In this document: positions 1 to 60,500 of the stretch, one piece after another
Position numbering within the stretch: position 1 is the stretch's first letter
How the letters are laid out: each line of letters opens with the position of its first letter
NCBI RefSeq assembly: GCF_902652985.1
Contig: NC_047023.1
Location: 15,996,001-16,060,000, forward strand
Length of the DNA: 64,000 nucleotides
Direction: 5' to 3'
Origin: Pecten maximus
Taxonomy: Eukaryota
Notes under the pieces: model-generated
The model's database searches: none
The model's input: only the letters and a program-made list of their open reading frames with translations
What the model was told of the DNA's origin: nothing
Program-made: the position numbers and the translations under genes

Positions 1-582
1 TATTCTTCTGTTTCTCCACCTTCTGTTGCCACGTCGGTACACGTCACTTCCGTATATATCACGATTCCATGCGTCATTACCCCAGCGATTGGATCCCCAT
101 TGACCCAAACCTGTATCCCAACTGTTACCAATTATACCGTCCAACAAAAAGGAATCCCGACTTCCTCCTGTAAAGGTTATTGTTTTATTAGATGTGATCA
201 TCAGCATTAACAGAAACTGTAATGTATCTAGATATATGTTAATATGTAGTAGACAGAAAATCAAATACAAAACACGAAATAAATTACAGAGAAATTGTTA
301 AAGTAGGTCTGTATGAATATAAAATACAACTTTTTTTTATTTTGTTTTATTGATCTATTTTTATTTTCTTTTATAATGTTTTGTGAAGAAATATGACAGA
401 TTACCATAACGACGAGATAAAATGAAAATGAAAAATACATTAACATGTTCTCGTGGAAATTATTAATAGTATTTAGGTGTGTATATATACATAATGAAAT
501 CGAAGGTAAAATGAGAATACTTACGATATGATTGGCACATGACACAGGCCATCAGACAGGAGAGTACGATCAGCTTCAGCAT
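1..582 (-). CDS. Secreted Trp/Arg/Asp-rich small protein, class A copy 1 (3' end runs off window); coding exons 582-525 and 167-<1
   Basis: ATG at 582 gives MLKLIVLSCLMACVMCQSY + 1 nt, then GTAAGT donor. Acceptor TTTACAG before 167; in frame RGSRDSFLLDGIIGNSWDTGLGQWGSNRWGNDAWNRDIYGSDVYRRGNRRWRNRRI... Non-coding exon 1 ends at 1023 (GTAAG); paralogous to 7248-7912. Confidence 0.88.
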
Positions 583-1103
583 CTTCACCTTTTTTCTGTA
601 AACAACATTTTGAAAATGTATTATTCTGTGTACTTAACAGAAAACCTACATCTGTGTTTGTAATATAATACTTTCTAATATAAAATGTTCACCTACTTAT
701 TTACAATGATAGCTTTGCCGAGTTTATTGTCACTAGCTGTCGTTCTTACACACAAGACTATGGAAGCCGTTGCTATAAACTGAGATTCTAAGGTAACTAG
801 CTATGATTGTTGTCTAAATAGACAATATTTAATATACTTTATCAATATGTATGGCAAGTAACTGCAAATTTGTAAGTAACTATTTCAAATTAAATATCAG
901 TAATTGTGTGTGCCATAAATGAATATGAAATATCATCAACTACTTCCTTAAAACAACCAAATCGGTTGACGATTCTATCATTACTTGCTGTCAAAAACGC
1001 ATAGAAAAATCATCAGCCTTACCTGTATTCACTAACGTACAGTAGCTTACACTTGTTCAATCTCTGTCAGAGCTTGTTGTGTTTGAAAAGGAATTATTTA
1101 CAC

Positions 1104-1241
1104 TTTTATATACATTCTGACGAGGAAATCGAACGTGTTTTTATTTCCTCATTTTCCTATGTTCGCATTTATTGCGATTACGAACATATATCTTACTCTA
1201 TTTATAGCAATCTGGGATTGCCATATATCTGCTATGACGTA
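1104..1241 (-). promoter_or_regulatory. Core promoter of class A copy 1: TATATAAAAG (1104-1112), ATTTCCTCGTCA (1118-1129), TGACGTA (1235-1241)
   Basis: TATA upstream of non-coding exon 1; motifs conserved in the paralog at 8410-8548. Confidence 0.65.
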
Positions 1242-7247: not shown

Positions 7248-7703
7248 TCAATATCTGTCGATTCTCCTGTTTCTCCACCTTCTGTCTCCACGTCGGTACA
7301 CGTCACTTCCGTATATATCACGATTCCATGCGTCATTTCCCCAGCGATTGGATCCCCATTGACCCAAACCAGTATCCCAACTGTTACCAAGGATACCGTC
7401 CAACAAAAAGGAATCCCGACTTCCTCCTGTAAAGGTTATTGTTTTATTAGATGTGATTATCAGCATTAACATATATGGTGCTGTATCTAGATATACTCTG
7501 ATACAGTTGGCAGAAGATTAAGTTCAAGCACGAAACCTTTTACAGAGACATTTTAAGTAGGTCTGTTTGAATATCAACACTACTCGAGATTACATTTCGC
7601 CATTTATTTTGAAATCATATTTATTACAGAGAAACTGTTTAAAGTAGGCCTGTATGTATTTAAATAGCACTTGAGATAACATGTCTCCATAGATTTTGAA
7701 ATT

Positions 7704-7741
<38 letters not shown>

Positions 7742-7912
7742 GAAATACAACAGATTAGCAATAAGACGAGATTAAATTTTTTTTTTGTTAAAATTATTAA
7801 TAGTGTATATGTATATATATATACTGATATCGAAGAATAATTGAGAATACTTACGATACGATTGGCACACGACACAGGCCATCAGACTGGAGAGTACGAT
7901 CAGCTTCAGCAT
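7248..7912 (-). CDS. Secreted Trp/Arg/Asp-rich small protein, class A copy 2, 78 aa; coding exons 7912-7855 and 7426-7248
   Basis: MLKLIVLSSLMACVVCQSY|RGSRDSFLLDGILGNSWDTGLGQWGSNRWGNDAWNRDIYGSDVYRRGDRRWRNRRIDRY*. GT-AG phase-1 intron; exon 1 donor after 8334; 3'UTR intron 7220-6898; AATAAA at 6806-6801. Confidence 0.92.
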
Positions 7913-8409
7913 CTTCAGTTTAGTATTTCTGTAAACGACATTTTGTAACTGTATGGTTCTGTGTACTTTACAGAAAACCTACAATTGTGATTGTGATGGA
8001 ATAGTTTCGCATATAAATTTTAAGATTATCACAGTCTTATTTACAATAATAGCTTTGCCGAATCTAGCTGTCATTCTTACACACATACAAAGTAATCGAA
8101 GGCCTTTGTGGGAGACTTTGATATTTTATTACACTATATAGAAGTCACTGTTATCATATAAGGTTATATTTTAACTAGCTTGCATTGCTATTCATATAGA
8201 CAATCTTCAATAGACTTTAATATGTATGATTGGTTACTATTGTTTGATATAAATGAGTATAAGATATCATCGGCAACTTTCTTACATCCACCATAGACGT
8301 GGCTGATTTTACACAAATCATCATCAGACTTACCTGTATTCACCAATGTAGCTTACACTTGTTCAGTCTCTGTCGGGGCTGGTTGTGTTGAAGAAAGAAT
8401 TATCAACAC

Positions 8410-8548
8410 TTTTATATACAATCTGACGAGGAAATCGTTTGTTATTATATTTCCTCATTTCCTATATTCGCATTTGAATTACGATGACAACCAGAACAAT
8501 GCACACTATTTATAGCAATCTGGAATTCCGTATTTCTCACATGACGTA
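8410..8548 (-). promoter_or_regulatory. Core promoter of class A copy 2 (TATA 8410-8418; ATTTCCTCGTCA 8424-8435; TGACGTA 8542-8548)
   Basis: Position relative to exon 1 and conservation with copy 1. Confidence 0.65.
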
Positions 8549-10253: not shown

Positions 10254-10280
10254 ATTTCCTGGTCACATTGTATATAAAAG
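10254..10280 (+). promoter_or_regulatory. Core promoter of class A copy 3 (ATTTCCTGGTCA + TATATAAAAG)
   Basis: TATA 10271-10280; exon 1 donor AG|GTAAGT at 10348/10349. Confidence 0.65.
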
Positions 10281-10637
10281 GATCAATGTTTTGTTGTCCA
10301 ACACAACCTGCCCTGACAGTATCAGAACAAGTAAACACTATAGATAAGGTAAGTCTAGGAATGTCTGTATGCTCAAAGCTTATTTATATCATTACGTGTA
10401 GTTAGTAAAAAAGGAGACAATAAGATTTGGTGCTCAAAAATGAAGAAATCTTTAAGATATTTCAATTTTTAACATTTCAAGATCTGGTCATATATTTGGG
10501 TATATTAAGCATACAAAAAAAACATTCATTTATCAGAATACTACTTTGTATATAATTACCATGTATTCCCATGCTATGTAAATCGTATCAATCAATTTCA
10601 ACTTGACATTTACAGAATTTAAAATACCAACCTAAAG

Positions 10638-12295
10638 ATGCTGAAGCTGATCGTCCTGTCCTGCCTGGTGGCCTGCGTAGTGTGTCAATCTTACCGTACG
10701 TTATATATCTTATTCTCTTGTTGCATTATACACAACTCCTACTTATTACACCTATCACAGGCAGTAAGGTTTTCAGTTTTTATTCCCTTTATCTACCATA
10801 AAATAACACAGTCAACATCACTTTATTTCAGTTAATTCATATTAAAACTTAATTATGTATGGTGTTTGTTTTGAAAGAAATAGTAAATTAACGAGACAAA
10901 ACATTACAAATACAAATAGGTGATGCATTTACTTCGGTAATCATAGTAACATTGACTCAATTTAATAGTTTACACTTATTTAACAATATACTGTATGCTG
11001 GCCCATCATATATGAAAGCAGAGAATATTAACCTGTAAACAAGATCCTGGTTCTAACTCAAAACTTAAAATATGAACAAATACAGATTTTCTTTGAAAAA
11101 TACCAAGGAAATCTAGATCAGGTGTTTAAGAAGTATAAGCTCTTCTCCTTCATCGGCGACACACACCATGGAAATCTAGGTCCAATATCGGTAAAGTCGT
11201 GTTCACAAAATGAGAACCACTTAGTGGCATCTGAACTTCGTATCGGAATATAATTATAAGTGGCAAAGGACTGTGAAAGTGTGTTACCTGTTCGAGGTAG
11301 AAATGAGTAAACTCAGCCAAGGACTGGTACTATCAAACAAAACATAATTTGAGGCAAAGTCGAGTCCGTTAGAGATTCTAAACACACACCGATGTGAAAT
11401 GTAGATAAGTGTATCAAAAATTATATAAACGAACTACATGAAGTTTGAACTGAATTATTACCGCCACCTCTCTCAGTTACACGTCAAATCATCCATATAA
11501 AGAAATGACGTCAATTCTATTTGCGCCGAAGGTATTTGGCAGATAGGTAGCGTATGAGTTTTCCCTGTCTAATTTACGATAGGGACTGCTGCACAAAAGA
11601 CACGTCAGTACATGATATCTTTGATCATATTTTTTGTAAAAAAACAACAACGTATATATCGAAAATACTAATAAAACTGCATCATACAGCTGTTTCGTCC
11701 TTCTAGAAATCGTTAGTAATGCTATGTGCATAAAAATAGAGGATGGGTTTAACGGGAAGCCGGGAAAATAAATCAAACATAGCATGGACATATGTTCAAA
11801 TATAGAAGCGAAGGTGCATTAATCTTATTTTGATAACATAAGCTTGTTATAATTCGTTATTTATTTTATGAGGAACACAAACAGCCCTAGGGCTTACATT
11901 AGCTTAATTATGTCCATTCTTTATATTGAATAATTTTAATATACATTTAATACCTAGGTATAATATGGGGCGGTGTCATCTAATTATTTTTTAATTATTT
12001 TGATTTAAATCATTCTTTCTAATTATATGGATGATTATAAACAATACATTATCAGTGTTTGTAAAAAAAAAAAAAAAAAAAAGTAAAAATAGTTATCACC
12101 ATTACAGGACCAATCGGAGGAAGACGTGACTCCTTCCTGTTAGACGGTATCATTGGTAACAGTTGGGATACTGGATTGGATCGTTGGGGATCCGATCGCT
12201 GGGGTAATGACGCATGGAATCGTGATATATACGGAAGTGACGTGTACCGACATGGAGACAGAAGGTGGAGAAACAGGAGAATAGACAGATATTGA
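10638..12295 (+). CDS. Secreted Trp/Arg/Asp-rich small protein, class A copy 3, 81 aa; coding exons 10638-10695 and 12108-12295
   Basis: MLKLIVLSCLVACVVCQSY|RPIGGRRDSFLLDGIIGNSWDTGLDRWGSDRWGNDAWNRDIYGSDVYRHGDRRWRNRRIDRY*. Donor GTACGT, acceptor ATTACAG; 3'UTR intron 12322-12819; AATAAA 12913-12918. Confidence 0.92.
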
Positions 12296-15084
12296 TGTAG
12301 AGGCCATGAAGTGTGGAAAAGGTATTTAATGAAATTCTACACAACAAGATTAAAATCAGATATTAAAAATATATGTGACATACAGAGGAAAACATCAAAG
12401 AATAAATGTACAAAGATTTGAATTATATCTTAACAAGCTACTCATGTTTTTTTTAATCAGCTATAACTGATCATATTAGATAATATTTACTTTAACTACT
12501 TAATTAGAGTTAACATTTGAATAGTTATGCTTTAGAATTTTCACAAGTATACATGATAATCACAGCGTTATATGTTTGAGATGACAAATATGGGGAAATT
12601 GCTCCTTTATTTCATATTAATATCATGATGTGATTAGAGATATAAAACAGTACTTATTTAAATAATGGGTTTTTTTCTCTATGAAACGCCTTCAAATATC
12701 ATTTAAATTTAACTCTTGCTAAGATTTATATATGTTTTACTATACAGTGAAACAATTAAAGGATTGATTATCAATGATACAAGTATTAGATACTTATTTG
12801 TGTTCTGGTCTATTTTCAGATCCATGTGGCCAAAGATTGAAATTGAAAAATCCATTTAAAAGTGAATTCTTTCATTGTTACACTCATTTGTAAATTCATA
12901 TGCGCCCATGTAAATAAACTCATATTCAATATAAACATATTTACTGTATTTGTTTCTGTTTCCGAAAGAGTAAGATGTAAGATGTAAGATCAATCAATTT
13001 GATATAATATCAAAACGTGCTGATTTATGAATATTTTGGATACAATTTGTCAATGTGAAACACACAAATCAGGTAAAATGACCTCGTCGGAATCTCCCTT
13101 AAGGGATTAAAACAGATAATAGACAAAGCATTACATAATTGAGTCATTCGAATTATGTATAACGACGTCTGCAGGTTTTCTGTCCTGTAGTCATTACACG
13201 AAATGTATACATGATATAATGCAATTTTAGATTTGACCTATAACCCTAAGCAAATGTGACGTATCTTAACATAATACTGGAGAAGATTCAATGTATTACT
13301 GAGAAAATCCCACTCGCCAATGTGTCTCCTTTCATATTACGAAACATACATCTGTCACACTATATAGACCTAGCTGTATTCTAGTCAGATTCACGACCAT
13401 ATATAGCCTGTTTGAAGTTATAAGTCTGTGTTTGTTAGTATGATGTTATTGTGGCAGTGTCCGTAAAAGGCTCTACTGAAAAGTTAACTCGTAGTAAGAG
13501 TAGATTTGTTCATTTTACAAATGTCTTAATTATTATCAACGAATATTGATAATCTAAAATCATGTATGATGTAGATTAAGAATAAATTCTGATAGAATGA
13601 AAAACATCAAAATACTGGAAAATTATTCAATACATCTACATGGAAAGTGTGAACATATGACAAAACTGAAAGAACAATGAATATTTACATAGATGCGGTC
13701 ATGACGTGATTGTTACGCCATTTTGATCAACGTCATGGGAATGGTTCGCTATGCGATATTAATTAATCAAACTCAACGAGGATTCTAATTGATAACAGTT
13801 AGGTTACTGTGATGTCATTCAGACGCTATGTTGATCTTTGTCCCAGTAATGCTTTGTACTGTGTGTCAAATTGGTTGCGAATCAATCACAAAAGGAATTT
13901 GATTTCAAGATGTTATTCTTTCAAATAATGATGCAGGGAAATGAATTAAAATAAAGGACGTGTTAATAACTTTAGGAAATACAAAGTTTAATCTATATAA
14001 ATGTAAATATACCAATTAAATGCTTGTTGGATTGTAATTATTGTCACTTTAAATAAAATCTTGAAGACAGATGACTATTCGTGGCGCCCTTCCTAAAGGA
14101 CGCCATTTTATGTATCTGTCACCAAGATAGCATTTATAGTGACAATAAATAAAATTTAACAAGCGTTTAATTATTCATGATATACATTCTGAAATCTACT
14201 GTTTGATGCAATTCTCGTCTTATACATTATCATATCAGATCTAAGTTCTAATATTTTTATTTATTTCATTTTTTTTTCTATTTTCCTAATTGTAATGAAT
14301 CGTATCTAAATATCTTATTTTTTTCGTAATTTTATAAAAATTACGACGAAAATAAGAAAGAAAAAAACATGGAACATATAGAATTTCATATCGCAAAAAT
14401 AAATTGAATATTTAGATAAATACCACGAAACACATGAAAATGGTCAAACGAAGAATGTTTGGATACTACTGCATTTATTAGAACGATAAACTCTTCGTCA
14501 CACATTGTTTCCGTAATTTTTACACATCTGTAATGAATCTGTATGTCAAACGTCATGCGCCAAAATAAAGCCATTGATCGAAAAAGACAAGTTACTATTT
14601 TGATAGGGTAAACATGATTTCGATATGTCTGACAGACTCATTTTCTCGACTTCCCTTCTGTTTTAGGCTCACCCCTTAACATCGATGACGAATCATAGAA
14701 TGTTTTAAGTGTGATTAAAAGACTGTTACCAGTATGTGTGTTTCAGATGAGGGAGTAGTTGAACATTCTACAAAAACAATTAAAACATCGCAAATGTAAT
14801 AACCGACTGTTTATTATCATATACCAAACTGTATGAGATAATTGTTCATCTGGTGCGGTATTACTGCTGTAGACGCTTAGGAAGCTATACATCTTGGTAC
14901 AAGATCTGTACACGAGGATTGTAGCAGATTATCAAAATCACTAGCGATATAAAGATCACAATATTTCAAAAGCTAGTTGTGTATTATATAAATTCTAGTA
15001 AATATAGAGTAGCATATACATTACGACAAACAACGTGGCTCTACTATTTTAGATGATGTAGTGTTTCCGAATCACTCTGTAGCT

Positions 15085-15961
15085 TCACAACCACAAGGGC
15101 GATCTATTATTACTTCCTCTAATGTTGCTGAGGTGTTGGTCTCTTTGTGACTGTCGGTCACTCATTACCTGGTCAATATGCCCCTGTAGATCACTCTGTA
15201 TCTGCTGGTTTCTTTCTTGCATGTCACTTATGAGCTGACTATTGATCCAAGGGTTGTTGTTTATAGGTGAGCCCCAGTGGGCGCCGCCTGCCAATGGATG
15301 ACCCATCCTATATGGATTCACCATCCGATCTAAACAATCAATAAAGAACATGAAGGTAGTGGGTATTTTAACTACAGTAAAATATTTATATAAAAGTTAT
15401 ATGTATATAGCTATCATCCATAAATCAAGATGTATAGGTCCAAGTTGGTATTGCAGAAATTAATATTTATATAAAAGCTAAATGAATACAGCTAGCATCC
15501 ATAATTCAAGATGTACAGGTCCAATGTATATTAAAACGCAGTAGTTATTGGAGTGGATACAACAGGGGGAGGGGTGGTATTATAATTAGAAATACAATAT
15601 ACAGCGTTATTGAGGCATAGAGAATATATATCTGTAGTACAATTGTATTATGTAAAATATCACTACATACAGTATAAGATAATGTCCTTAAATGGTATTA
15701 AAAGCAATTGATTGATTATAAGCACAGGACAGAAAACTAGTGTCAGCGTTCTATTCTGCGTTTATGATATAAACTACAACGTCACAGAATGCCAATTAGG
15801 TCGTATCTGACGCTTTCTCTATCATAGCATCAACATCTTAACACAAACTATGGTATGTAAACATGGACGACAAAAACCATGCTGTTTGGCTACTTACTGT
15901 AAATTGGCTGGCATGCAGTCAGAACGACTAGCAATGGTAAAAGGCCAATCACCCGCAACAT
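15085..15961 (-). CDS. Secreted Asn/Gln/Asp-rich small protein, class B copy 1, 102 aa; coding exons 15961-15898 and 15329-15085
   Basis: MLRVIGLLPLLVVLTACQPIY|NRMVNPYRMGHPLAGGAHWGSPINNNPWINSQLISDMQERNQQIQSDLQGHIDQVMSDRQSQRDQHLSNIRGSNNRSPLWL*. GTAAGT donor, TGTTTAG acceptor, phase 1; exon 1 donor after 17601; TATA ~17648-17657. Confidence 0.88.
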
Positions 15962-16084
15962 CTTGATTGTACTGTTTCCTGTGGACAAATAGATATCAGT
16001 CAGACAATCCATAAATTCCACCTCTGTTTACAGCCTAAACGCACAAAGCTGATAAGGACTTATAAGTCTTAGCGCGCGACTTTA

Positions 16085-16600
16085 GTGGTCCCCTACTTCT
16101 TTGGAAACAAAACTTTTTTTGCAGACTCCTTCACCTACTTATTCTGATACAATACCATTTCTGGAGACACAGTCCCCTACTTCTTTCGACACAGTTCTAT
16201 TTATGTAGACACAATCTACTTATTTAGATACAACGTTTTTTCTATAGAAACAGTCCCTTACTTTTTAAGATACAATACTACTCTGTAGAAACAGTCCCCT
16301 ACTTCTTTAGATGCAATGATATTTCTTTAGATACAAACCCCTATTTTTTTTTAGATCAGATACTATTTCTATAGAAACAGTCCCTTACTTTTTAAGATAC
16401 AATACTACTCTGTAGAAACAGTCCCCTACTTCATTAGATGCAATGCTATTTCTTTAGATACAAACCCCTAATTTTTTTAGATACAATACTACTCTGTAGA
16501 AACAGTCCCTTAAATTTCTAAATACAATAATATTTTGGTAGACACTGCCCCCTTTTACTTAGATACAGTATTTTCCGGTAGACACTTTCCCTACCTTTGT
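16085..16600. repeat. ~41 bp minisatellite (GAAACAGTCCCCTACTTCTTTAGATACAATACTA...) in intron 1 of class B gene; duplicate at ~25605-26125
   Basis: About 12 degenerate units visible. Confidence 0.8.
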
Positions 16601-17159
16601 TGAGATATATTCATTTCGGTACATATATTCTTTTGTGTTAGACCATACCTAGACTTATAATAATATAAGCTATGATGTCATGCAAATACTTTACACACAT
16701 TGCTACTGCAGAATATTTACATTTCCACTGTGTGTTCTCTATATGGAGGTACTAACAAAATTAGCGTTTATTCCTAGGTGAACAATTAACCTGCCACGTA
16801 TGAATACATACAGTACATTGTTGACGGTGCCACGTAGAATGCAGAAGTGTGAATATAACATCGCGTTTGATTACACATGAAATAATGTTTTATCAACTTT
16901 AAAACTTGTTAATAATTGTAAAATTGAAGACAACATTTCAATATTTTTCTTTATGATGATTAAAATAATGAATTTGTGTGGAACTATATTTTGTGTACTT
17001 GTGTACTTGATTACCTTTCCCGCCAAATTGGAACTATCTGTTACGCTGTTACATCGAACATTCAGCTGTTTCGTCACTACGTATAACGAACGTAGAATAC
17101 TGTTTCTTATGATTTTTTTCTAAGATTACGTTGAAAAATAGTTTTGAAATGTAAATATT

Positions 17160-17318
17160 AGAAATAATTGTTATTTTTTGTTGTTCACTGGTGTATGAAC
17201 GGCATTTTTTGACAGATATTTCAACATGACGCGCTAACGCTAACGCGCGTCATTTAAAATATCTGTCAAAAAATGCCGTTCATACACCAGTGAACAACAA
17301 AAAATAACAATTATTTCT
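17160..17318. mobile_element. Hairpin/MITE-like element with ~62 bp perfect inverted arms
   Basis: AGAAATAATTGTTATTTTTTGTTGTTCACTGGTGTATGAACGGCATTTTTTGACAGATATTT and its reverse complement at ~17257-17318. Confidence 0.75.
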
Positions 17319-18698
17319 TAACACACAGCCATTAAAAATATCTTAAGAGTCTTTCTGCTTCTATGGACACAATATTATTTCTCAATACACATTGCTGTTT
17401 TTGAAGATTCACAGCCAGTGAAAATAAAGCCTAGTAATTGATATAGATAGTTTACTAATGTCGATTAACATATCAATTAAAGTAGTGTCCTATTAGTTTA
17501 AATATTTGTTGAAATGGGTCACATTTTATATACGTTTATACGTTAAGTGCGTACATATCCACAAAACTAATGACTGAATCTTTTAGTAACGTGAACTTAC
17601 CTTTGTCGTGTCGCCTGACCAACTACAGTTAAACTGCTATCTGCCGATATATTTATAAACCAGAGTGACAATGAATTCAGTCGAAGATCGATGTATACGT
17701 CAGTAGGTTAACATATTTATGCAATAATTATAAAGTTATTCACACTTTGTACGGCGACAATTTTATGGTGATATTTAAGAGTCACCTAATGAAATATAAA
17801 ATGTGGTCTATGTGAGAGAGCTACATGAATATTTAATTATGTATGTGTGTAGCTTCCTTATTTCTATTCTCACCAGGTGAACACATTGATATTGCAGTGT
17901 TAGATTAATTTGATATACCTTTCACTTTTCAGATTTTTATATTTTTGCATCTTAGCTTACCTTGTTTTGAGTTTTTATTTTGCCTTTCTTTGTTGTGCGC
18001 CAGTGTCCAAACTTCAGTCATGTGATTCTACTTCCCTGTCCACCACCAACACTTATGTAATATGCTAGCTGCTTCCAATTGACTTTGCTAGGGAGTAAGT
18101 AACCACGGGAAAGACACACTATTTCTAAGGATTTGTTTAGGGAGTGCGTAACCAGATAAAATTCTAGCTGCATTCTATAGACTGATGAAAATATCTCACT
18201 TTTTAGACGAGCGTTACAACTCTAAGCGAATGTTCATTAGTTCGGTCTTAGGCGGAGGTCCTGAAATCCATATTGTATCACATTGTATATAAAAAGATCA
18301 ATGTTTTGTTGTCCAACACAACCTGCCCTGACAGTATCAGAACAAGTAAACACTATAGATAAGGTAAGTCTAGGAATATCTGTGTGCTTGTAGTATATTT
18401 ATAATATCACGTGTAGTCAGTAATGTTATACCATCAAGACATGTGTGAACATTTATATGACAATTAGAAGAAAATAGCAACATGAAAACATTACAAATCT
18501 AAATCGATAGCTAAGATGAAGCAGATATAGATTTACATGAAAAAAAGGGGTACATTAAGCATTAAAAGCCATTATTTTTATCACTGAAAGAGATAATTAT
18601 ATTACTTTGTATGTAATTATCATGTATTCTCATGCTATGTACATTGCATAAAAGAGTTTTAACGTGTCATTTACAGAATTGGAAATACCAACCTAAAG

Positions 18699-36051: not shown

Positions 36052-36756
36052 CAGTTGAACCATAGGTGCTTAGCACCTTTATAAGTCCAAGACCGATTAT
36101 AGACTAATTTATAGAGAAAGGTCTGGAACTCCTCCGTCCTGGAAAAATTGGTCAATTGCATTCAAAGTGTCGTCAAAATTTTACCAGAAAAGATTTTTCA
36201 ATGGCGATAGTCTTAATCAAAAGTTAAGACAGTAACCTTTACATGACACCAATAAATCATAATTACATGTAAATAGTCTATTTCGTTCCTGCGCAGCTTC
36301 GAAACTCTGAAAAGTGATGAATTTTCTTTAGCCGGACACGATCGAGAACATTTTTTCAAACGAAAATGTCTATTCGCTACACAGAAAACGTGACGGTCTA
36401 CAATTACAGAGTTTGGTGGTCATAACAAACTTATTTACTTGTCTAACGCTTCATACCATTTCCCCTCTCGTGCTCCCCATGGTTGTTTTCTGCATTGACA
36501 GGTATCAGTGTCAAGTCGACGGCCATCTTGCTACTTGCCATTCAAGTTTTGTAAAACGAGATTCATTGGTCAGCTATTGGCAGTGACGTGATGGCCGTCG
36601 ACTTAACACTGATACCTGTCGATGCAGAAAACATAAAATGTTGACAATGAAATTGACCAATTATTGCAGGACGGAGGAGTTCCAGACCTTTCTCTATATA
36701 TTAGTCTATAATCGGTCATGGACTTATAAACGCGATAAGCACGTATGGTTGAACTG
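36052..36756. mobile_element. MITE ~705 bp with ~105 bp TIRs (CAGTTGAACCATA...TATGGTTGAACTG) and an internal ~42 bp-arm palindrome (~36486-36631)
   Basis: TIR match includes TATAGAGAAAGGTCTGGAACTCCTCCGTCCTG; no TSD seen. Confidence 0.8.
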
Positions 36757-50500: not shown

Positions 50501-51706
50501 TAACACTTCAGATTCTACCATTATATGCATATAAGCTCTACATTTTACATTCTACATCGAAAATTAATGTTTGCCTCTGAATCGTCGTTCAGCCTTTAAA
50601 AACGAGCAACACAAGACTCTTGGAAATGCAAATTGATTAAAACCATGGAAAATTGGTTATGGTTGACATCATGATAATCTTTTCGGAAATATTTGATATC
50701 CATGAGCGATATCAAATAAGATTTGCCAGATGTGTGTTGGCATTCTTAGTGATTCTGTTTCCACCAATCTATCTCACATCTTAACAATCTGAATTAACTC
50801 AGGTTTGACCTTGATTTGATGAAGCAGGAGACGCTTGCTCTCCGTAACACCTGGTCTTTTTCTCCATGTTCTTTTTCAAGGTTCTCCATGTACTTTTGTT
50901 CTCATTTTTTCCTCATTTTTTACGATTTTGATTAAGAATTACGGTTTCGTTTCAATTTCGATATTTTCTGTTTTCGGCAGGTTTTGTCCTGTTATTCATA
51001 TAATTCTCTCCTTTGTAAAATATTGAAGATGTCTCTGAATAACGCAACAGCTAATGTTGCCAGTAGTAATTTTGCTTTTTAAAGAAATTACTTTTAAATC
51101 TTTTTCATATTCTTTATGGTGCACCTTCCCGGCTGGCGAACAACCTTATCATCGATTTCGTACATACGTTTGTTAAGCTTTAATTAAAATAACTCCTAGC
51201 AGGAACACTTAAATCTGTTCGTTATATTGATTATTTTATCAGTAGATAAATATAGTAAAAACACAGGTCATTTGTCAGAAATATTTTATTAGAGAAAATC
51301 TTTTTTGGTAATAAATAAGGTGATGGTCATGATGATGGTGATGATGGAATATACTGTGTTAGATGAATCTGCAATGAAAGAAGAACTATTTAAATAATTG
51401 CCAAGGAAAGCATATTTATATATATAGGAAAGCTAATATACATCTACGTTCGTATCGACATTTTGTATATATCATTTGCTTAAGACATGATACGCATAAA
51501 GCTGTTATTTTTGCATTATTTTCCTTTTTACGATGAAGAGTTTGTGCTACCTTCACGTTAAATTGCGTACTCTCCTGATTTAATATGATCTAATAATACA
51601 TAACACACAACACTCAATAACTATGGAAAATAGAAACTTAGAAATTTGCCAAATTCAGAACAGATAGTTCATCATAATACTGAGCTTACCTGTAATTTCT
51701 GCTGTC

Positions 51707-52315
51707 TTAATATCCACCAATTACAGGACTTCTCCTCATCCCTCTGTTTCCGTATCCACGTCCAAAGCTTCCTAGTCCGTTTCCTCCTCGGCCGTAGATA
51801 TTTCCAAATCCAGATCCATATCCAGATCCAAAACCGGATCCAAATCCGGATCCAGCTCCAAATCCAGATCCAAAACCGGATCCAAATCCGGATCCAACTC
51901 CGGATCCAAATCCTGATCCGAATCCAGATCCAAATCCATCATTACCAGAAAATCCAAGATCTTGTCCATATCCATCGTCAAATCGTGATGACCCAAATCC
52001 ATTTCCAAAACCATTACCAAAGGAATTTCCTGCGATAAATGGTTTATTGTTTAGTAAAACTAACAATACTTATTTACATATTTACTGGATTTCATATAAA
52101 GATCAATGAACATAAATAATTGTCTCGTAGTTTTTTTTTTATATTCTTTACAAAGTTAAAAAAAAAAATGAAATAAAATGATGTAACAGATTATCAGCTA
52201 CAGGAAATAACAGGTGTCACTTTTGTAGTGTGACCTGACTGTATGAGTACTCACCATAATAATGGCAGAGCCCACTAGCCACGAGGCAGGACAACAGAAA
52301 CAATACCTTCATCAT
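51707..52315 (-). CDS. Secreted (GSGF)n glycine-rich protein, class E copy 1, 127 aa; coding exons 52315-52255 and 52029-51707
   Basis: MMKVLFLLSCLVASGLCHYY|GNSFGNGFGNGFGSSRFDDGYGQDLGFSG...(GSGF)n...GMRRSPVIGGY*. GTGAGT / TCGCAG; exon 1 donor after 53094; TATA 53159-53166; 3'UTR intron 51689-51369; AATAAA 51290-51285. Confidence 0.93.
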
Positions 52316-53084
52316 GGTGTCGGGTTGGTAGGGACTGAAACATAGCAAAATTAAATCATAAGATAATAGTTTGTAACGCCTGGAACTAAAACATGCTCAG
52401 GAACTAGGGTATAATATTTAATCGAATCAAACATTTAAAACATCATTATATATTTTGTTTCAATTTGCATGTTCATAATGGGCTGTGAGTGCCATCAGAT
52501 TCTTGTAACTCGATACAAAGGTAAATATATGATACTGCATAGTTGTTTAATATCACAGGGCTAATATTTCGCTGTTGTCCCAGCCAGACCTAGTTCGCAG
52601 GTTTTAAGTTTCGCTACGCCTTGTAAACTTTCAGCAGTAAACAAGCGAAATTAATTCTAAATTAACTACTTTACATTTCTTGAGATATTAGGTTCAGGGA
52701 ATATTTGCAGTAGCGATATCAACTCCAGCTTATTTATGCAATTACAATTAACTAGTGAAACATTCGCAGGCTCTGGTGGTATACCAAAACAATAGAATTA
52801 TCTTCTGATTATCTAAAACGAATTTCGATATCATTGACACCGCTTATAACAGTAATGTTGTATTGCTAACACATTATATGAGTCGGAAACTCCATACTCA
52901 TGGTAAGTATATACACGACAAGGAAATAAATACTCATCAAAGAGAAACTTTAGTTTTAACAACAATGCCAAATAAACGAAACATAGCGTCAAAAATTCGA
53001 AAGATATGACTTCAGACGTAAAAATAATTATTAAACTTAATATAAGGACAAAATTCAAATGACAAAATAAATACTACAAATACA

Positions 53085-55990
53085 GGTACTTACTTAGACG
53101 TCTGTACGATTCGATGTCAAGTAAAGATTGAGAATGGTTCATGGATGATTCTCTTCCATATTTATACTAGTTCCACTAGAAAATTAGGAAATGTATCTCC
53201 AATTCGATTTGATAATAATAATGCAACAATACAACTAATGACCAGTGACGGTCACGACGTACATATTACAACCAATGACCTATGTCCAGTGAGTTTTATT
53301 GGCAGGAACCAGCGGACCAGTGACAACTGCCCGAGGCTGTACTACACAACAGTCATACAACGGAATGAGTGTCATTGTCTATTACTTATGTTTTAGAAAT
53401 CGTCGGACATTTTTGTATGTATCGTGTACTTTAAAACAAGAAGATAATAATTAGGTGTAAACGAACTCATATAATTCAATCTCAAATCGATAACAGCTAG
53501 AAGAAAGAAGGATACATAAGAGAACACACGGACGTTAAAGAGGTTACTGACTCTTTCTAAACTAACCAATAAATTCCCATTAAGCAATCACAAAATAGAC
53601 ATTCAACATTGTTAAGATGTCACAATAAATTATATATTAAATCATTGTACCTAAAACATTACATTATACAATAACACAAGATAGCTCGTGGTCATTGTCC
53701 TAACCATATTCTCTCTTTTGCCGTATAGAATGCACTGTCCGATGGTGTTAGTAGAATACATCCATAGTTAACCTTACAAATCCCTTAACAAGGGTAACTG
53801 TCTGATTCCATCTCATTATAACTGTTACAAACGACACATTTACCAGCCACGACTGTCAATGGTTTGTAGTTCTCTCAACAGTAATTTTTTTCAAACGAAT
53901 TCATGTTCTATGTGTTATTGCAATAAGGTTGTTAAAACTACTGACCACTTCCTCCCCCATTGTCCTACCGGTATATACCAACAACTTAGGATATAGTGCT
54001 TCATGAGTATTCCTTCTAACTCCGACGTCAACAGTCTCTTAACTAGAAACCTGTATGTCAAATAAATACCACAATACCATGTGAATGTCTTCGATTGTGC
54101 CAAATTGTATTATTGCTTCTCTTAAAGCTGTTCTAAAAATGTAATCAATATGTGCAGCTCCATACTTTATGTATGCATTTGCAGCCAATTGATTCTAATA
54201 CAATGCAGTGATGCAGTTCGTTGCTATTTTCTTTACGTAACCCTTTCTCTATTTAACTTATATTGTTCTTGAATATTTTGTATTCCTGTTACATACATTA
54301 CACTACCGACACATGATCGCTTGTCGAAAAAAGACAATTGATATAAGTACTTCGTACCTGTTTTTGAATCCTTATTGTAGAGTGTATAACAATTGTACTA
54401 TATATATGGTATAGGTCAATTAAATGAGGAGATTAGTTTATGAGATGCTTGAATTTAGGTAAATATGAAACAAAATGCGATTTTAATTTGATATAAAAAG
54501 TGTTTAATGGCAATAGTATTGAAAAATATATATTGATAGGGAAGCCAGCAAATATTTTATTAACAGAAAATTTGGAGAGCGGGGAGAGCTAAAATAAATC
54601 ATATTAAAGATGTGAAATATTCATGTCTTCTCAATGCATTACTACGCATGCACCTATTAAGATGTACTTCTATAAACACGGTTGTCATTTTTACACACGT
54701 TCCTTCTCATGTTGAAAGGAATAAGAGTATGAATGATGCATGTAATGTAATACATCGTTTATTCAAGAAACATAATGTACACGTGATGTCATTTAACTAA
54801 ATAATCCCTATACTGTTTAATATTTCCTAATGCTAGCTCTACTTCCGCAAAGGTTGTTGACCATGTCTAGAGACGTCCGGGTAATAGGAAAGAGGAATAA
54901 AAAATATCATGCCTGTTTCCGGAGCTCAAACTAGTGAGCATTCGTACTCTAAGAGGACATCCTACAGTTAGGCTTAATGGCTAAATAAATACATTATCCC
55001 AAACCAATTAAAACAACAAGCAAACAAACAAACAAAAACAAAAAAACAGAGAGCAGCAAAAACGAAAGTTCTTTGCTAAATATATATATATTTTAATTTC
55101 CTGTCTAATTTCATTCCTAAAATTAAATTTAAAATTAAAGTTCAATATCTGTCTCGTATCAACGACGCAACATTAAATCCAATATATAACGAATTCGTGT
55201 TAGATGTTCCATCTGTTATAAAGTAATTATCTGACTTTTATGTTAGGTACACTCTTTCAATTCAAAGGAAACAGTTTACAGTTGATGTTTAGAATGAATA
55301 GAAGTCATTTTTAAGATTATTTGAAACGTGGTAAGTATATGTAAGTACCTAATTAAATTATATCGTTGTAATTTGATATAGTATTTATTTAAATATATAT
55401 TTGATTAGTGCAGTAATATATACATTGAAGGCATCTAAACACGACTAATGAATATATAATGTCTTCTTACTGCTGTTTTGTCACTCTTCAAAGGACAGAA
55501 GTGTGAAAATCCAGAAAAAAAGAAATCGGTAAAAACAAATGCTCACATATGTTTTGGGAAATATTATATACAAAGGAATTTGGCAAGTTTAAATAAGGAA
55601 AAGTAACCAAACAACTTCAAACTTCAAACACGTCGGCTCTATGTCCTTATCTAAAATGTTCCGCGATATACATGTATTTAAAACACAAGTAACGGACATT
55701 GACACAGATATCCTACTTATTGTGTGACTCGTGTAGTACAGCCTCGGGCAGTTTTTATCACTGTTTAACATAACTCACTGGACACAGGTCACTGGAAGTA
55801 TGGATACGTCACGATCGTCACTGGTCATTTGCCGTCATAACTATGATTTTTTGTCATTTTTACGAATCGTAATTGACAAACATTTCCTGATTTTCTACTG
55901 CAACTAGTATAAATAAGGAGGGAAATCACTCCCTAACCATTCTCAATCTTTACTCGACAGCGAATCGTACCGACGTCTAGGTAAGTACCT
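53085..55990. promoter_or_regulatory. Divergent paralogous promoters/exon 1 of the two class E genes (53085-53360 inverted-homologous to ~55720-55990)
   Basis: Inverted similarity covering exon 1, TATAAATA, ATTTCCT and the TGTACTACAC...TGCCCGAGGC block; the middle of the interval is unrelated. Confidence 0.7.
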
Positions 55991-56912
55991 GTCTTAGCAG
56001 TGAGCTTTGAAGTATATAACTCGTTTGTCTTGTACTATCGAAGTCAATGTTACGCATTACTGTTACAAGTCGTTTTATTATCAAACTTTAAGTAACATCT
56101 TTACATTGCCACCTCAACATGGTGCGAAAGAATAGAATACCAAGGATATCTCTTTATTACCTTTTGTAATTATAATTACCTTTTCTAACAATGATAACCT
56201 TTTAATAATGATTCCCTTTTGTATGAATAATTAATTCACAACTGAAAAATTGATGTTCGACATCATGATCTCATTTAAAAATATTCCATTTCCTTGTACG
56301 ATATACATGTACGATCAGTTCGATTCCTGTTGATATGCCTAGGGATTCCTAATAATATAGCGCTTACTCTTCCTGAACACGTTGTCTCATTATCTTTGTA
56401 CTTATTCAATAGTTTCCATGCAAATCTATATTTATGTTCGAAATTTTGTTTAAACAACAATTTATGGTCGATACCATTTATAACAAATAGGACATATTAA
56501 TGTTCTTGATTGATATGAAGTAACGAAGTTCTCTCTTCTGGAACGCCAGGTTAATCCTCACGTATTTCTCAAGGGATGACATGTGAACAACTATATTGTT
56601 CTTATTGTTTCTTTTATCATATTATGGTTTTTAATTTAAAGTAACAGTTTTTGCTTGGTTGTGGGTATTCTCTTCTGTTATATGTATATCATTATGTTAC
56701 AAATTGAAGGGAAATATTTAAAAAAAAAAATAATAATAATAATAATTTAAAATGATGATCCATCGCTATTAACCCCTAGAAACCGACATCATGCTAAAAC
56801 TGTGAGTAAAATTACAAGGTCATATTGTTAATTTGGTATGGTTCATTTCCAGAAATTACAAAATAATAAAATGTAAATTGGGTATATGTTACAGACCCTA
56901 CCACCCGACACC

Positions 56913-57586
56913 ATGATGAAAGTAATATTTCTCCTATCCTGCCTCGTGGCTTGTGGGCTCTGCCATTACTATGGTGAGTACTCAGTATTTGTTTATACAT
57001 CGATGTTTATCCACTTAGTGTAGACTATTCTGCTTGATCACCATCTTATATATCAGTAGTCATCATGGGTTCATATATACAATTGAAGCATATCTTAATA
57101 ATCATTCTTATTGATAAATGACATCAACAAACCAAATAGATGCAATTTTTACTTCAAGGTTATATGTTCGTCACGATAATAGACATGAACCCTGTATATC
57201 ATTTTACATTTTGGTCTTTCATAGTCAGACCAACGTCTAAATCTAATCCACAACTTTAAATTGCAGACAATTCCTTTGGCTCGGGCTTTGGATCAATGAT
57301 GGACAATGGATATGGACAAGATCTTGGATTTTCTGGTTATGATGGAATGGGTTCTGGATTTGGATCTGGCGTTGGATCCGGATTTGGATCCGGATTTGGA
57401 TCCGGATATGGATCTGGATTTGGATCTGGAGTTGGATCCGGATTTGGATCCGGATTTGGATCTGGATTTGGATCCGGATCCGGATATGGAAATTTCAACG
57501 GCCGAGGAGTAAGCGGACTTGGCAGTTTCGGACGTGGATACGGAAGCAGGGGGATGAGACGAAGTCCTGTAATTGGTGGATATTAA
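56913..57586 (+). CDS. Secreted (GSGF)n glycine-rich protein, class E copy 2, 126 aa; coding exons 56913-56973 and 57267-57586
   Basis: MMKVIFLLSCLVACGLCHYY|DNSFGSGFGSMMDNGYGQDLGFSGYDGMGSGFGSG...GMRRSPVIGGY*. TATA 55908-55915; exon 1 donor 55980/55981; 3'UTR intron 57604-57937; AATAAA 57967-57972. Confidence 0.93.
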
Positions 57587-60500
57587 GACAGTAGATATTC
57601 TAGGTAAGGAAAAATACTCGTTGTTCAATATGGTTTGATTCTGGAACTGGTTTGTATTGTCCACCATATGTTATGATCTATGTTATTAGTTTTCCTAATT
57701 AAACTTGATTTGGTAATGAGACTTATATGACAGTAAGATACGTGTGTTTGTCAGTAGAACACAGTTCCCCTTTAACTTATACAAATGTATAGCTCTGACA
57801 GGAAAAGAATACAAATGTCACCTTAAATAAATTGAGTGATGGAAACATAAACATGTCGAAGCGGTAATTGACATACATATTTGTAACTTTTATAATGTTA
57901 AACTTATTATTATAAACAAAATTCTCTTTCTTTGCAGATACATCTCATGCAACATTAAGACATTTAAATAAAATACCAAACAAAATGATAAAATAAAAAA
58001 TACGGTATAGACTGAATATTTCTACCCGTGATATATTGAAAAATTGAAGATCAACTTTTGAAACTGTTTGCTTCCAACGAAAGTTGCGACATTACTTTTG
58101 GGCACATGGCGTCATCTTAATGTACTTGCAACTTGTGACTAGCGAATAAGGAGACACATCTTCCGGCCTAAACCATACTTTGAACGTGAAGGATTTACGA
58201 AACGTATACTAGTGAATAACACCTTATTTGGTGATAGATATAACTAAATTCTCCTAATGAAAAAGGCCAAACGTGTATACAGTAAATGATACCGTGAAAA
58301 TCAAAATAAGTCCTAACAACTTTTTAAGAGTGATTGACAGATGCATCAACCCGTTAATTAATTTAGACAGTTTCTAATTTGTTTTGGGAATGCATTTAAA
58401 ACAAAAATAATAATACGTGTGTATATTCTAATAGAATGTCACTATTTACACTCGTGAAAATATTTAAGGATTATTTTATTTTCTGTAAGCAAGCGCACCA
58501 AGATATAATACAAGTGTAATATTCAGTTACCTCAAATCAAACTTCAAAGTAAAAAATAAAACAAAAATATTCTTTATATTTACACTACGCAGCTCGGTTA
58601 TTTCATGCAATATTAGAAAAAAAAATCAATTACCTTATACACACCGCTTAAACAACGGTGAGTTTATTAGAACAGCCAAATTAAACCTAATTAAGCATAA
58701 GGTTACGCTGCAGTACGTGTGAATGACGTCAACAGTTAACGAAGTAGTTCGAAGAAAATAATGATATTTTTAATATTTTTTACTAATATTTTCCTATAGT
58801 ACATGCATCGAAGTGTATCACAACTGCAAATAGTAATGTTATTCTGCATGATGATCAACGAGTAATAAATAGTGAGAAGACCAGACTGGCTTGAGTCTAG
58901 GGCGGTCGCGGGGCCAGGTCGTCAAGACTGTAATAATGTCATTTCAATATTCTTCCATTTTACCGAACTCAATTCCGTAAGAAGCCACGATATCTTCCAG
59001 AATGTTCCGGTTCAGTCCGGCTGACGTAGAAAATTCGAATGAAATCGACCGCAACTGGATTCATGATGTCAATACAGAGTGCAGGCGACAAGATTCCAAT
59101 TTCGCGTCTGTTTGGAACAAGGTTTCTTTACTCTTGAAGTGCACCCGGAACGAAAAGAATATTCAAATATGTTATTCTATGTAATCGCCAATGAAGAATG
59201 TCACAATCCACATCAAAATCGATTGACCAAGTGCCGAGATATCGCACATCGAAGTACGCGATTTGCACCTGTCGGTCGACTGCTAATCAGCGCATCGGTC
59301 AGTCACGCTGATTTGGGACTCTTCAGTTTATGACGTCTGAGGTTTAACGGAGTTAAATGTAGTGGCAGTCAGCAATAGATGCGATCTGGACATGAGTATT
59401 AAGATTGAAGACTTGCCCACAAGAAAATGGAATCCAACCCTATTAGTTTGAGCCTTTTAAAAGAACACGACATCAGCCAATGTTTTGATTATGTGTCATT
59501 TTATTCACAAATAAATATTCAAATAAACATTCATCGACTTTCTCTCCCGTTGTAAAAAAAATACTTCTACAGATACAGACTGCTTTTTTATGTACATGTC
59601 ATGGTCTCATGGCTTACCGACGATTAAATGCTTAAGAAATATACGAGTATATCTACGATCATTGTCAATGAAATTACGTAAAACTGCTGCACAGCAATTA
59701 TATTCAAATGAAACGTAAGGATTGAAATATCTTAACACGATACAGGACATTAAACTACCGTTCATGGTTAGCTAAAAATTCAAATGGTTGAAGTGTCATT
59801 TAACCATTTTCAACATTGTATCCTGGAAGCACATATTTACAATTATCGGAATATAACTGAGTGTGTTTAAAATTCAACATATTGTAAAAATAGCTATTAC
59901 GTTCAGAATTGCATCACCCATTTGGAATATATTACCACAATCTGTTGTAGAGGCAGACAACATACTACATAAGAAAACGTTATACAGTAAATTGATGAAA
60001 AGGTATTAAAGGAACTCATGTGGATTTGCATATATATTGTAGCTATAGCATTTTCAGTAAAATGCATTACTTTATTTCAAACGTTTAATTTATGAATGTA
60101 TTATAGGTTATTATCAAAACCATAATTTCAGCTCCATTTTTAATAGTGTAACACGAAAAAGACAGACAATTAAGTCAATGGTGAGTAATTATAACTAATA
60201 CTAAAAACGTGTTAGACTGTTATGTAAACCCCTCGCTATGAATAATGGGTAATAACATTTATTTATATTTGTATAAATAAATACATTTATATAAGTCTGT
60301 AATTGTTTGATTATTATATGATGAGAGGGGCAGTTGGACCCTCTCGTCTTCCATTTGTTTCTGGTTATTATGGGGATGGGCTAACAATGAGGGGTCAAGA
60401 AGGAGGTCCTTAGTTGGGCCACGTGATGGAAAATTCCCAGGACTTGACTGACCTCTGGTCATTTTGGCTGAAGCGATAACAGCTTTTGATTGGTCAGCCA

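Follow-up and report, generated by a model that had tools for sequence, protein, structure and literature searches.

A scallop tandem gene cluster in which most genes place a common promoter and signal-peptide module ahead of differing cysteine-free secreted proteins

The window analysed here, 64,000 nucleotides of the Pecten maximus genome (C9:15996001-16060000), is only the centre of a larger tandem gene cluster. The whole cluster covers 224 kb of contig C9 (15.893-16.117 Mb) and holds about 35 small spliced genes, most of which share a promoter and signal-peptide module ahead of differing Cys-free secreted proteins. We propose, at a probability of roughly 45%, that this scallop tandem super-cluster encodes disordered secreted proteins that are built into an extracellular material. 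The genes fall into five classes, with about 22 genes in A, 2 in B, 1 in C, 1 in D and 9 in E. Classes A and E each consist of many near-identical copies, and classes C and D are single-copy in the genome. Of the 26 matches that a degenerate signal-exon pattern yielded across the 918-Mb genome, 24 lie within the single 224-kb stretch; the reversed-pattern control yielded 2. An earlier note on this DNA had described a hidden cluster of ten genes at positions 1-57972. The ten signal exons are indeed present, but the cluster far exceeds the window; and "hidden" suits the in-window class A3 and E1 genes, for which no database protein was returned, but not the two class B genes, already in RefSeq as uncharacterized proteins. 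Standard annotation thus catches only part of the cluster.

Each gene follows a plan of a short 5' exon, a phase-1 signal-peptide exon and one exon encoding the entire mature protein. The ten signal-exon ATGs in the window are located at 582(-), 7912(-), 10638(+), 15961(-), 18699(+), 25480(-), 41835(-), 48914(-), 52315(-) and 56913(+). All ten signal exons end at a canonical phase-1 GT donor after 55, 58, 61, 64 or 76 coding bases, and a splice acceptor lies 10-23 nt 5' of each ATG. The mature exons, one per gene, contain no Cys, have AG acceptors and lie 225-1823 nt 3' of the signal exons. The features are as follows, in window positions.

1-167, minus strand: mature exon of gene 1 (class A3); its final 11 nt, with the stop, precede the window start
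525-582, minus strand: coding part of the gene 1 signal exon, 58 nt, phase-1 donor GTAAGT; TATAAA at 1103-1110
7248-7426, minus strand: mature exon of gene 2 (class A3), 58 residues plus junction codon and stop
7855-7912, minus strand: coding part of the gene 2 signal exon; start of exon 2 near 7928, TATAAA at 8409-8416
10638-10695, plus strand: coding part of the signal exon of gene 3 (class A3), donor GTACGT; TATAAA at 10273-10280
12108-12295, plus strand: mature exon of gene 3
15085-15329, minus strand: mature exon of gene 4 (class B, RefSeq LOC117334766), long alpha-helix predicted
15898-15978, minus strand: signal exon of gene 4, ATG at 15961, 64 coding nt, phase 1
17961-18021, minus strand: portion of gene 4 exon 1 with the in-frame upstream ATG of the RefSeq model
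18699-18756, plus strand: signal exon of gene 5 (class A3), intact
20185-20373, plus strand: broken mature exon of gene 5, acceptor AG changed to TG and frame shifted by a 1-bp insertion
24604-24845, minus strand: mature exon of gene 6 (class B, RefSeq LOC117334768)
25417-25497, minus strand: signal exon of gene 6, ATG at 25480; exon 1 with upstream ATG at 27426-27486
41304-41503, minus strand: mature exon of gene 7 (class C), rich in Asp, Phe, Tyr, Arg and Gly
41781-41835, minus strand: coding part of the gene 7 signal exon, 55 nt, phase 1
46450-47015, minus strand: mature exon of gene 8 (class D), 39-bp in-frame tandem repeat, 13-residue units ending Gly-Arg-Arg
48839-48937, minus strand: signal exon of gene 8, ATG at 48914, 76 coding nt; 1823-nt intron backed by a transcript contig
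49514-49586, minus strand: TATAAATA box and predicted exon 1 of gene 8, ending at the GTAAGT donor; TATA-to-donor distance 73 nt
51707-52029, minus strand: mature exon of gene 9 (class E1), Gly/Ser/Phe repeats; the transcript runs unspliced to at least 51405
52255-52334, minus strand: signal exon of gene 9, ATG at 52315, both ends in transcript contigs
53094-53166, minus strand: TATAAATA box and exon 1 of gene 9, whose end at 53094 is the contigs' 12-nt loose end
55908-55980, plus strand: TATAAATA box and predicted exon 1 of gene 10, with 83% identity to the module of gene 9
56895-56973, plus strand: signal exon of gene 10 (class E1), ATG at 56913, 61 coding nt
57267-57586, plus strand: mature exon of gene 10, 12-bp in-frame tandem repeat

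The architecture that had been described for ten loci holds for the signal exons and phase-1 donors of all ten, but for an intact mature exon in only nine. The exception, gene 5, is a pseudogene or an assembly error, given its lost acceptor and 1-bp insertion. Two of the predicted junctions, 47015|48839 in gene 8 and 52029|52255 in gene 9, occur in public transcript contigs exactly as predicted. The contigs also contain the exon 2 start of gene 9 at 52334, with a 12-nt loose end that matches 53094-53105, adjoining the GTAAGT donor. Furthermore, RefSeq proteins agree with the predicted junctions of class B and of one flanking class A copy. For these genes, the junction check proposed in the earlier note has come out in its favour, and the presence of spliced secreted-peptide genes is confirmed. 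Its assumption of co-regulation was not supported by the runs compared: one run has contigs of gene 9 (depth 100-300) but none of gene 8, and another has gene 8 but no gene 9, although contigs show presence and not absence. The occurrence of genes 8 and 9 in separate runs counts against a role in a material.

Genome-wide profile searches with the signal exons link four of the classes. With a profile built from class A only, the top non-A matches in the 918-Mb genome were class C (E 0.78) and class D (E 2.5). With a class-E-only profile, the top non-E match was class C (E 0.024), and class A copies appeared within the next four ranks. The class C signal exon, that of gene 7, is thus the best non-self match genome-wide for both profiles. 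Because class C and D exons rank top in these searches, we regard the A, C, D and E signal exons as homologous; the signal peptides of the cluster are of the MLKLIVLSCLVAC type. Classes A, D and E also agree upstream, each with a TTTCC motif, a TATAAA box and a short exon 1 that closes with GTAAG; in D and E alike, 73 nt separate the TATA box from the donor. The TATAAA box and short exon 1 were located for seven genes, all of class A, D or E. Upstream of the broken gene 5 there is just one promoter-like module, and it lacks the TTTCC motif; no TATAAA/short exon 1 module was found upstream of the class C gene. Descent of classes A, C, D and E from one ancestral 5' module, comprising promoter, exon 1 and signal exon, is supported by these sequence comparisons.

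Class B stands apart. Its signal scored 5 bits against the A/C/D/E profile, which is the level of random open reading frames, and its signal exon as a genome query recovered class B only. Its exon 1, 2 kb upstream, is not clearly non-coding because it contains an in-frame ATG. The single ancestral cassette and related signal peptides put forward in the earlier note thus stand for classes A, C, D and E, by profile ranking and, for A, D and E, promoter motifs, and the genome-wide search it suggested bears this out; class B, which it took for more distant kin, has no detectable relation. The claimed TATA box and short exon 1 were found for the seven genes above but not for class C, and the non-coding nature of exon 1 is doubtful in class B. 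The class B mature protein is predicted to form one long helix, and class B and class D, with its Gly-Arg-Arg repeats, may have acquired other roles.

No Cys occurs in the mature exon of any class, and no between-class alignment of mature exons was significant, just as had been noted from the sequence. In classes A, C and E, Lys, Glu and Cys are all absent, so that Arg and Asp are the sole charged residues, and Tyr lies near both ends; this composition without Lys, Glu or Cys is upheld over about 30 genes. Class A contains 19-33% Arg and 12-19% Asp, the latter spread along the peptide, and class E about 40% Gly, about 20% aromatics and 3-4% Met. Classes A1 and E end in Gly-Gly-Tyr after an Arg-rich stretch, and classes B and C are roughly neutral in charge. 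An AlphaFold2 model of class A has a pLDDT of 50 and is devoid of secondary structure, and an Atlas model has a pLDDT of 0.52; the mature proteins are accordingly predicted to be intrinsically disordered. Mature exons change length through short in-frame tandem repeats: arrays of 39-bp units are seen in gene 8 and of 12-bp units in gene 10, and the copies of class A1 vary in steps of one complete 7-residue unit.

From composition, we infer that the products may serve in a material or secretion, and a secreted structural or cross-linked material would be their most likely role, with defence peptides as the main rival. In our proposed model, the signal peptide would be cleaved after its last Cys to give small proteins rich in Arg, Asp, Gly and aromatics, with Tyr near both ends. 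These would be produced in bulk and incorporated into the shell organic matrix, periostracum, ligament or a similar extracellular material. Assembly may involve phase separation driven by aromatic residues and Arg, together with Tyr-based cross-linking, as has been proposed for abductin.

Class A has a pI of 10-11.7, a net charge of +2 to +11 and many Arg-Arg pairs, with Trp and Arg concentrated C-terminally. This cationic character counts against a material, fitting processed defence peptides equally well. The products would then be a host-defence family: secreted precursors, with cleavage at Arg-Arg in class A, would release linear cationic peptides that lack Cys and are rich in Arg/Trp or Gly/Tyr, and these would act on microbial membranes at mucosal surfaces or from haemocytes, like the myticalins of mussels. 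Myticalins are likewise described as confined to certain taxa and as having a conserved signal, mature regions that diverge and lack Cys, and many tandem genes with pseudogenes among them; the predicted helix of class B is in keeping with such peptides, and class E appears to resemble the Gly/Tyr-rich defence peptides of nematodes and arthropods. We nevertheless consider this explanation unlikely, albeit less so than the other alternatives below: selection within classes is purifying and not diversifying, Asp amounts to 12-19% throughout class A, classes B and C are roughly neutral, the myticalin signal consensus is not matched, and there is no conserved Lys-Arg with an anionic extension, the intron coming right after the signal.

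The mature exon of class D is prohormone-like, encoding some eight units of 13 residues that each close with Gly-Arg-Arg or Gly-Arg-Lys, which also speaks against a material. If the cluster encoded neuropeptide or hormone precursors, the N-terminal Gln found after the predicted cleavage site in classes A, B and C would cyclise, and convertases would cut dibasic sites to release partly amidated signalling peptides. The class D transcript is real and class A has several Arg-Arg pairs, but most of these pairs lie within Asp/Arg repeats without a Gly donor, and class E has almost no dibasic sites except one near the C-terminus. Neuropeptide genes are not typically as numerous as the roughly 22 near-identical copies of class A or the 9 of class E. 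Moreover, six peptide strings were looked for in the text and the available supplements of the Yesso scallop ganglion neuropeptidome (63 precursors), and none was found. Such a role for the cluster therefore appears improbable.

Within classes, dN/dS is 0.16-0.46 in the five sub-classes A1, A2, A3, E1 and E2, and introns are more diverged than the protein, so that these classes are under purifying selection. The mature regions are hence conserved within classes, and the conotoxin-type picture of a hypervariable mature region, invoked in the earlier note, does not apply. The same values bear on a mixed cluster of no common function, in which a duplicated promoter and signal module precedes low-complexity exons, some of them young, weakly selected or decaying. 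There are decayed copies, namely gene 5, a class E1 gene with a frameshift (C9:16063457) and one degenerate gene (C9:15950694); classes C and D have just one gene each, and class B paralogues show a dN/dS of about 0.9, from few changes. However, the class A core is kept across sub-classes and in Mizuhopecten, the composition rule extends to some 30 genes, and the class D and E1 transcripts are spliced and abundant; we give a mixed cluster only a slight chance.

A class A profile search of 1.84 billion representatives returned only one P. maximus and one Mizuhopecten yessoensis protein, the latter with the same signal peptide, and no homologue outside scallops, which suggests that class A is scallop-restricted so far. 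The class E search gave weak low-complexity matches only. None of the searches run matched the products to a named protein family, in agreement with the first impression from the sequence. The search of shell proteomes that had been suggested as a check gave no support: none of the cluster peptides was found in the accessible part of one shell-proteome supplement or in the available paper texts searched.

If these are material proteins, the cluster is a large, tidy and hitherto unstudied set of genes underlying a secreted structure specific to scallops, and its composition rule (Arg and Asp as sole charges, Tyr at both ends) can be tested in phase-separation and cross-linking work. If they are defence peptides, they would form the first large linear Cys-free family of this kind in scallops. 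Under either reading, the locus illustrates how a signal-exon cassette and short-repeat expansion give rise to new secreted proteins. In a broader and rather doubtful version, the promoter/UTR-exon/signal-exon module would be a cradle for new secreted proteins, in which tandem duplication set it ahead of exons whose interiors in-frame microsatellite expansion (7-, 13- and 4-residue units) remodelled, strictly without Lys, Glu or Cys. The outcome would be several seemingly unrelated disordered proteins for a scallop-specific extracellular material and at least one derivative, class D, turned into a multi-copy precursor of amidated signalling peptides.

Among known systems, conotoxins share with the cluster a conserved signal encoded apart from a divergent mature region and tandem family expansion, but the host here is a filter-feeding bivalve; membership was rejected, as there is no Cys framework and dN/dS is not above 1 in the five sub-classes. 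The sequence pattern of multi-copy amidated neuropeptides is seen in class D, not in classes A, B, C and E. The shematrins and KRMPs of pearl oysters have a conserved signal, a Gly/Tyr-rich low-complexity body and a short basic C-terminal tail with a final Tyr, to which the ends of classes A1 and E are similar. However, classes A, C and E contain no Lys, the defining residue of KRMPs and of the shematrin tail, and the searches gave no homologue beyond scallops for class A and just weak low-complexity matches for class E, so membership was rejected.

Myticalins are linear cationic antimicrobial peptides of Mytilus (PMC5577615). Like the cluster, they form a taxon-restricted multigene family with a conserved signal, divergent Cys-free disordered mature regions and pseudogenes, a 5'UTR-only exon 1, an intron 1 ending just before the ATG and a phase-1 intron. 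In myticalins, exon 2 encodes both signal and mature peptide, and the phase-1 intron lies in a conserved anionic C-terminal extension after Lys-Arg (PMC5577615), whereas the cluster intron directly follows the signal, no such extension exists and selection within classes is purifying. The consensus MKGxxLLLLTIxxALCMIxECEG is not matched by the cluster signals either, and myticalin membership was rejected.

Abductin is the elastomer of the scallop hinge ligament (Cao et al. 1997, reviewed in PMC9999432), and its Tyr residues have been discussed as possible cross-link sites (PMC9999432). The P. maximus abductin genes lie on another chromosome (C8:22.78-22.88 Mb). Their signal exon (MNTYICLA...) recovered five C8 copies only genome-wide and is not among the top A/C/D/E-profile scores, so that no kinship with the cluster signals is detectable; a back-translated pattern of the Met-centred abductin repeat GGFGGMGGGX hit contig C8 and scattered single sites but nothing in the cluster. 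Abductin contains about 58% Gly, against about 40% in class E, and classes A-D are not Gly-dominated. The likeness in exon plan may be only an analogy, since phase-1 signal exons are common among secreted proteins. Still, the cluster genes show the abductin plan of a 5'UTR intron with its acceptor just 5' of the ATG, a phase-1 signal exon (55 nt in abductin) and one low-complexity exon, Gly-rich in abductin, and the abductin proteins too are small (about 130 residues) and disordered, carry Tyr close to either end and come from genes duplicated in tandem.

Our analysis showed that the small, disordered secreted proteins encoded here form a family that is restricted to scallops, has been amplified in tandem and shares one 5' module. 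Upon a looser scan, the window (C9:15996001-16060000; GC 30-39%, zero N) yielded exactly ten signal-like exons, the number proposed in the earlier note, and the five signal peptides quoted there were all found, at seven window sites. The ten genes, with the position and strand of each ATG, fall into the following classes.

Class A3: gene 1, 582 (-); gene 2, 7912 (-); gene 3, 10638 (+); gene 5, 18699 (+)
Class B: gene 4, 15961 (-); gene 6, 25480 (-)
Class C: gene 7, 41835 (-)
Class D: gene 8, 48914 (-)
Class E1: gene 9, 52315 (-); gene 10, 56913 (+)

In every signal exon the acceptor lies 10-23 nt 5' of the ATG, and all ten end at a canonical phase-1 donor, either GTAAGT, GTACGT, GTGAGT or GTGAGA. 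The coding part of the exon is 55 nt long in class C, 58 nt in A, 61 nt in E, 64 nt in B and 76 nt in D. Putative cleavage sites of the signal peptides were assigned by the -3/-1 rule. The proposed single mature exon per gene was found as an AG-bounded open exon downstream, except that the mature exon of gene 5 is broken (acceptor AG changed to TG, plus a 1-bp insertion); that of gene 1 extends 11 nt beyond the window start. The predicted products comprise 78-81 (A3), 101-102 (B), 84 (C), 213 (D) and 126-127 (E1) residues. An Rfam scan of the window returned zero RNA families, and the other window ORFs gave no match to Pfam.

Transcript contigs of four public RNA runs (X1, X2, X7 and X9) from four studies were compared over window 46401-52400. 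A 628-nt contig of X9 links 47015 to 48839, as predicted for the junction of gene 8, with a minus-strand intron of 1823 nt bearing GT..AG ends. Likewise, an X7 contig links 52029 to 52255, the predicted junction of gene 9. The X7 contigs end at 52334, the predicted start of exon 2 of this gene, and 12 extra letters on them match 53094-53105, beside a GTAAGT donor; the exon 1 donor of gene 9 is located 73 nt past the TATAAATA box. Given the X7 joint and the 12-letter end beside the donor that follows the TATAAATA box, the full architecture of TATA box, non-coding exon 1, signal exon and mature exon is demonstrated for gene 9. For class B, independent support comes from RefSeq, as the junctions are as predicted in the Pecten maximus models XP_033750458 (LOC117334766, gene 4) and XP_033750459 (LOC117334768, gene 6), both of which begin at an in-frame ATG in exon 1, 2 kb upstream. 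In X7, gene 9 reaches a contig depth of 100-300 and gene 8 was not seen; in X9, gene 8 is present and gene 9 was not seen. As contigs prove presence, not absence, this split argues weakly against the previously suggested co-expression of the classes.

A GT-like, donor-like site (AAG|GTA) is conserved 15-25 nt past the stop codons of classes A, C and E (e.g., window 51685-51695). A 3'-UTR intron at this site was rejected, given that the gene 9 contig is unspliced there. Low-depth contigs of X1 and X2 cover window 47085-47985, in the gene 8 intron, and the intergenic stretch 50237-51033; they could stem from RNA still carrying introns, from carried-over genomic DNA or from repeats. At window 50289-50497 there is a 34-bp tandem array.

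The actual cluster is much bigger than had been drawn from the window. Searching the whole genome with a degenerate signal-exon pattern gave 26 matches, 24 of which lie within C9:15893143-16116675 on the contig of the window, against 2 matches for the reversed-pattern control. Across the window and both flanks we counted about 35 signal exons: class A has about 22 genes of sub-classes A1 to A5, mainly left of the window, and class E has nine, extending rightward, alongside two of class B and one each of classes C and D. Among them are one frameshifted copy of E1 and one degenerate copy of class A. In the E1 paralogue at C9:16063457 (+; position 3457 onward of the fetched stretch L012), the mature exon frame-shifts into a long Trp-Ile repeat. 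Within the window, an 8-kb tandem duplication (10538-18272 versus 18599-27737, 95-97% identical) bears a pair of A3 and B genes; in the second unit, 1.4 kb is inserted at about 22764-24212 and the A3 copy is broken. A class A signal exon is also present on an unplaced contig (C1900:8617-8673), with a profile score equal to that of the A2 copy at C9:15921043, and is probably a haplotig or uncollapsed copy.

Repeats occur elsewhere in the window. Two 42-bp tandem arrays (about 11.5 copies, 70% matches; 16088-16567 and 25607-26086) sit in the first introns of the two class B genes, immediately 5' of the signal exon, and a 49-bp array (10 copies, 84% matches; 28968-29461) lies between classes B and C, where genes are sparse. 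Direct repeats of 431 bp, 100% identical and 2.2 kb apart (35994-36424 and 38165-38595), may represent either a young LTR-like element or a duplication made in the assembly; ORFs near them gave zero Pfam matches. At 30203-30509 and 33764-34070, two inverted copies of a 308-bp repeat (91% identity) are separated by 3.3 kb and may correspond to transposon ends.

The earlier note regarded all the signal peptides as related, with class B more distant. Genome-wide profile searches upheld this relationship for classes A, C, D and E, but detected no kinship of class B. A class-A-only signal profile retrieved 22 A copies at E about 1e-9, followed genome-wide by class C (E 0.78) and class D (E 2.5), both in the window. 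A class-E-only profile retrieved the nine E copies, then class C at E 0.024, with class A1 copies within the next four ranks. Since the best non-self matches in the 918-Mb assembly sit in the same 64 kb, the signal exons of classes A, C, D and E are homologous. The class B search returned its own two copies only, and against the A/C/D/E profile class B scored 5 bits, as random ORFs do; thus, class B was set aside from the shared signal cassette. Classes A, D and E also have a promoter module in common, in which a TTTCC motif is followed 10-25 nt on by TATAAA[AT] and 58-84 nt later by a GTAAG donor; in D as in E, 73 nt separate the TATA box from the donor. This module was looked for upstream of class C and not found. 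A direct-repeat-1-like element, TGGACAnAGGTCA, at window 53276-53288 (-), roughly 110 nt 5' of the TATA box, is conserved between the promoters of genes 9 and 10.

Within classes, the mature exons are under purifying selection, with dN/dS of 0.46 (A1), 0.26 (A2), 0.16 (A3), 0.37 (E1) and 0.19 (E2), values unlike the hypervariable conotoxin pattern cited as a parallel in the earlier note. Intron divergence exceeds protein divergence, and the pattern resembles the amplification of a conserved product to raise gene dosage. Mature exons of different classes gave no significant alignment, in agreement with the earlier note. The best case, a short DND-aromatic-x-RD stretch between A and C (hhalign E 0.22, BLASTP E 0.014), is suggestive only, and the alignment of D against A was not significant; homology between mature exons of different classes is thus not established.

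Against 1.84 billion representatives, the class A mature-exon profile matched two proteins, with zero matches outside scallops. XP_033750872, the protein that RefSeq models for an A1 copy in the flank, is spliced exactly as predicted; OWF53962, from Mizuhopecten yessoensis, has a near-identical signal peptide and a body that is about half-identical. Homology queries were exons taken separately, and full-length queries were the database proteins P0014-P0017 only. Protein homologue searches gave no candidate for the A3 mature exon and weak low-complexity matches only, without a self match, for that of E1; from this absence in the protein collection, the in-window A3 and E1 products appear unannotated. 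None of eight mature exons exceeded the Pfam threshold. Accession or locus names and peptide strings gave no match in the literature, nor did the accessible portion of shell-proteome papers contain a match to these proteins.

The AlphaFold2 model of class A, from a 13-sequence alignment, has a pLDDT of 50 and zero secondary structure. In the model predicted for class B, the head is disordered and residues 26-73 then form one long helix (pLDDT about 90). Against the ESM Atlas, class A gave no usable match and class B noise-level matches only. The classes are compositionally not independent: Lys, Glu and Cys are absent from A, C and E, in which Arg and Asp carry all charge and aromatic residues account for 12-23%. 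In nearly all classes, a Tyr is found 2-4 residues past the predicted cleavage site and another at the C-terminus or close to it; the last three residues of A1 and E are Gly-Gly-Tyr. How the mature interiors change is seen from tandem arrays that keep the reading frame, with units of 39 bp in D and of 12 or 42 bp in E1, and from the varying number of a 7-residue unit among A1 copies.

We infer that the products are bulk extracellular proteins, which would condense and get cross-linked into a secreted material. The Arg-, aromatic- and Gly-rich composition, the use of Asp over Glu and the Tyr near both ends fit such a material, as do the TATA promoters, the many conserved copies and the very abundant transcripts. 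The high pI and Arg/Trp richness speak for the main rival, a family of myticalin-like defence peptides, but the abundant Asp, the purifying selection and a precursor layout unlike that of myticalins argue against it. Neuropeptide precursors fit only class D, and six test peptide strings are absent from the accessible portion of the text and supplements of the Yesso scallop neuropeptidome. The secreted-material reading is preferred, and the abductin genes of P. maximus, at least five signal exons of which were found between 22.78 and 22.88 Mb of contig C8, offer a comparison.

C8:22774001-22794000 and C8:22829001-22839000 (fetched stretches L019-L021): abductin cluster, mature exons of GGFGGMGGG and GGMNGGG repeats

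An exon adjoining these genes (L020:1021-1212) is a GNGFGNG-type variant. Kinship with abductin was rejected on the location on another contig, C8, and on a signal that is not detectably related; the abductin genes share their exon plan and terminal Tyr with the cluster.
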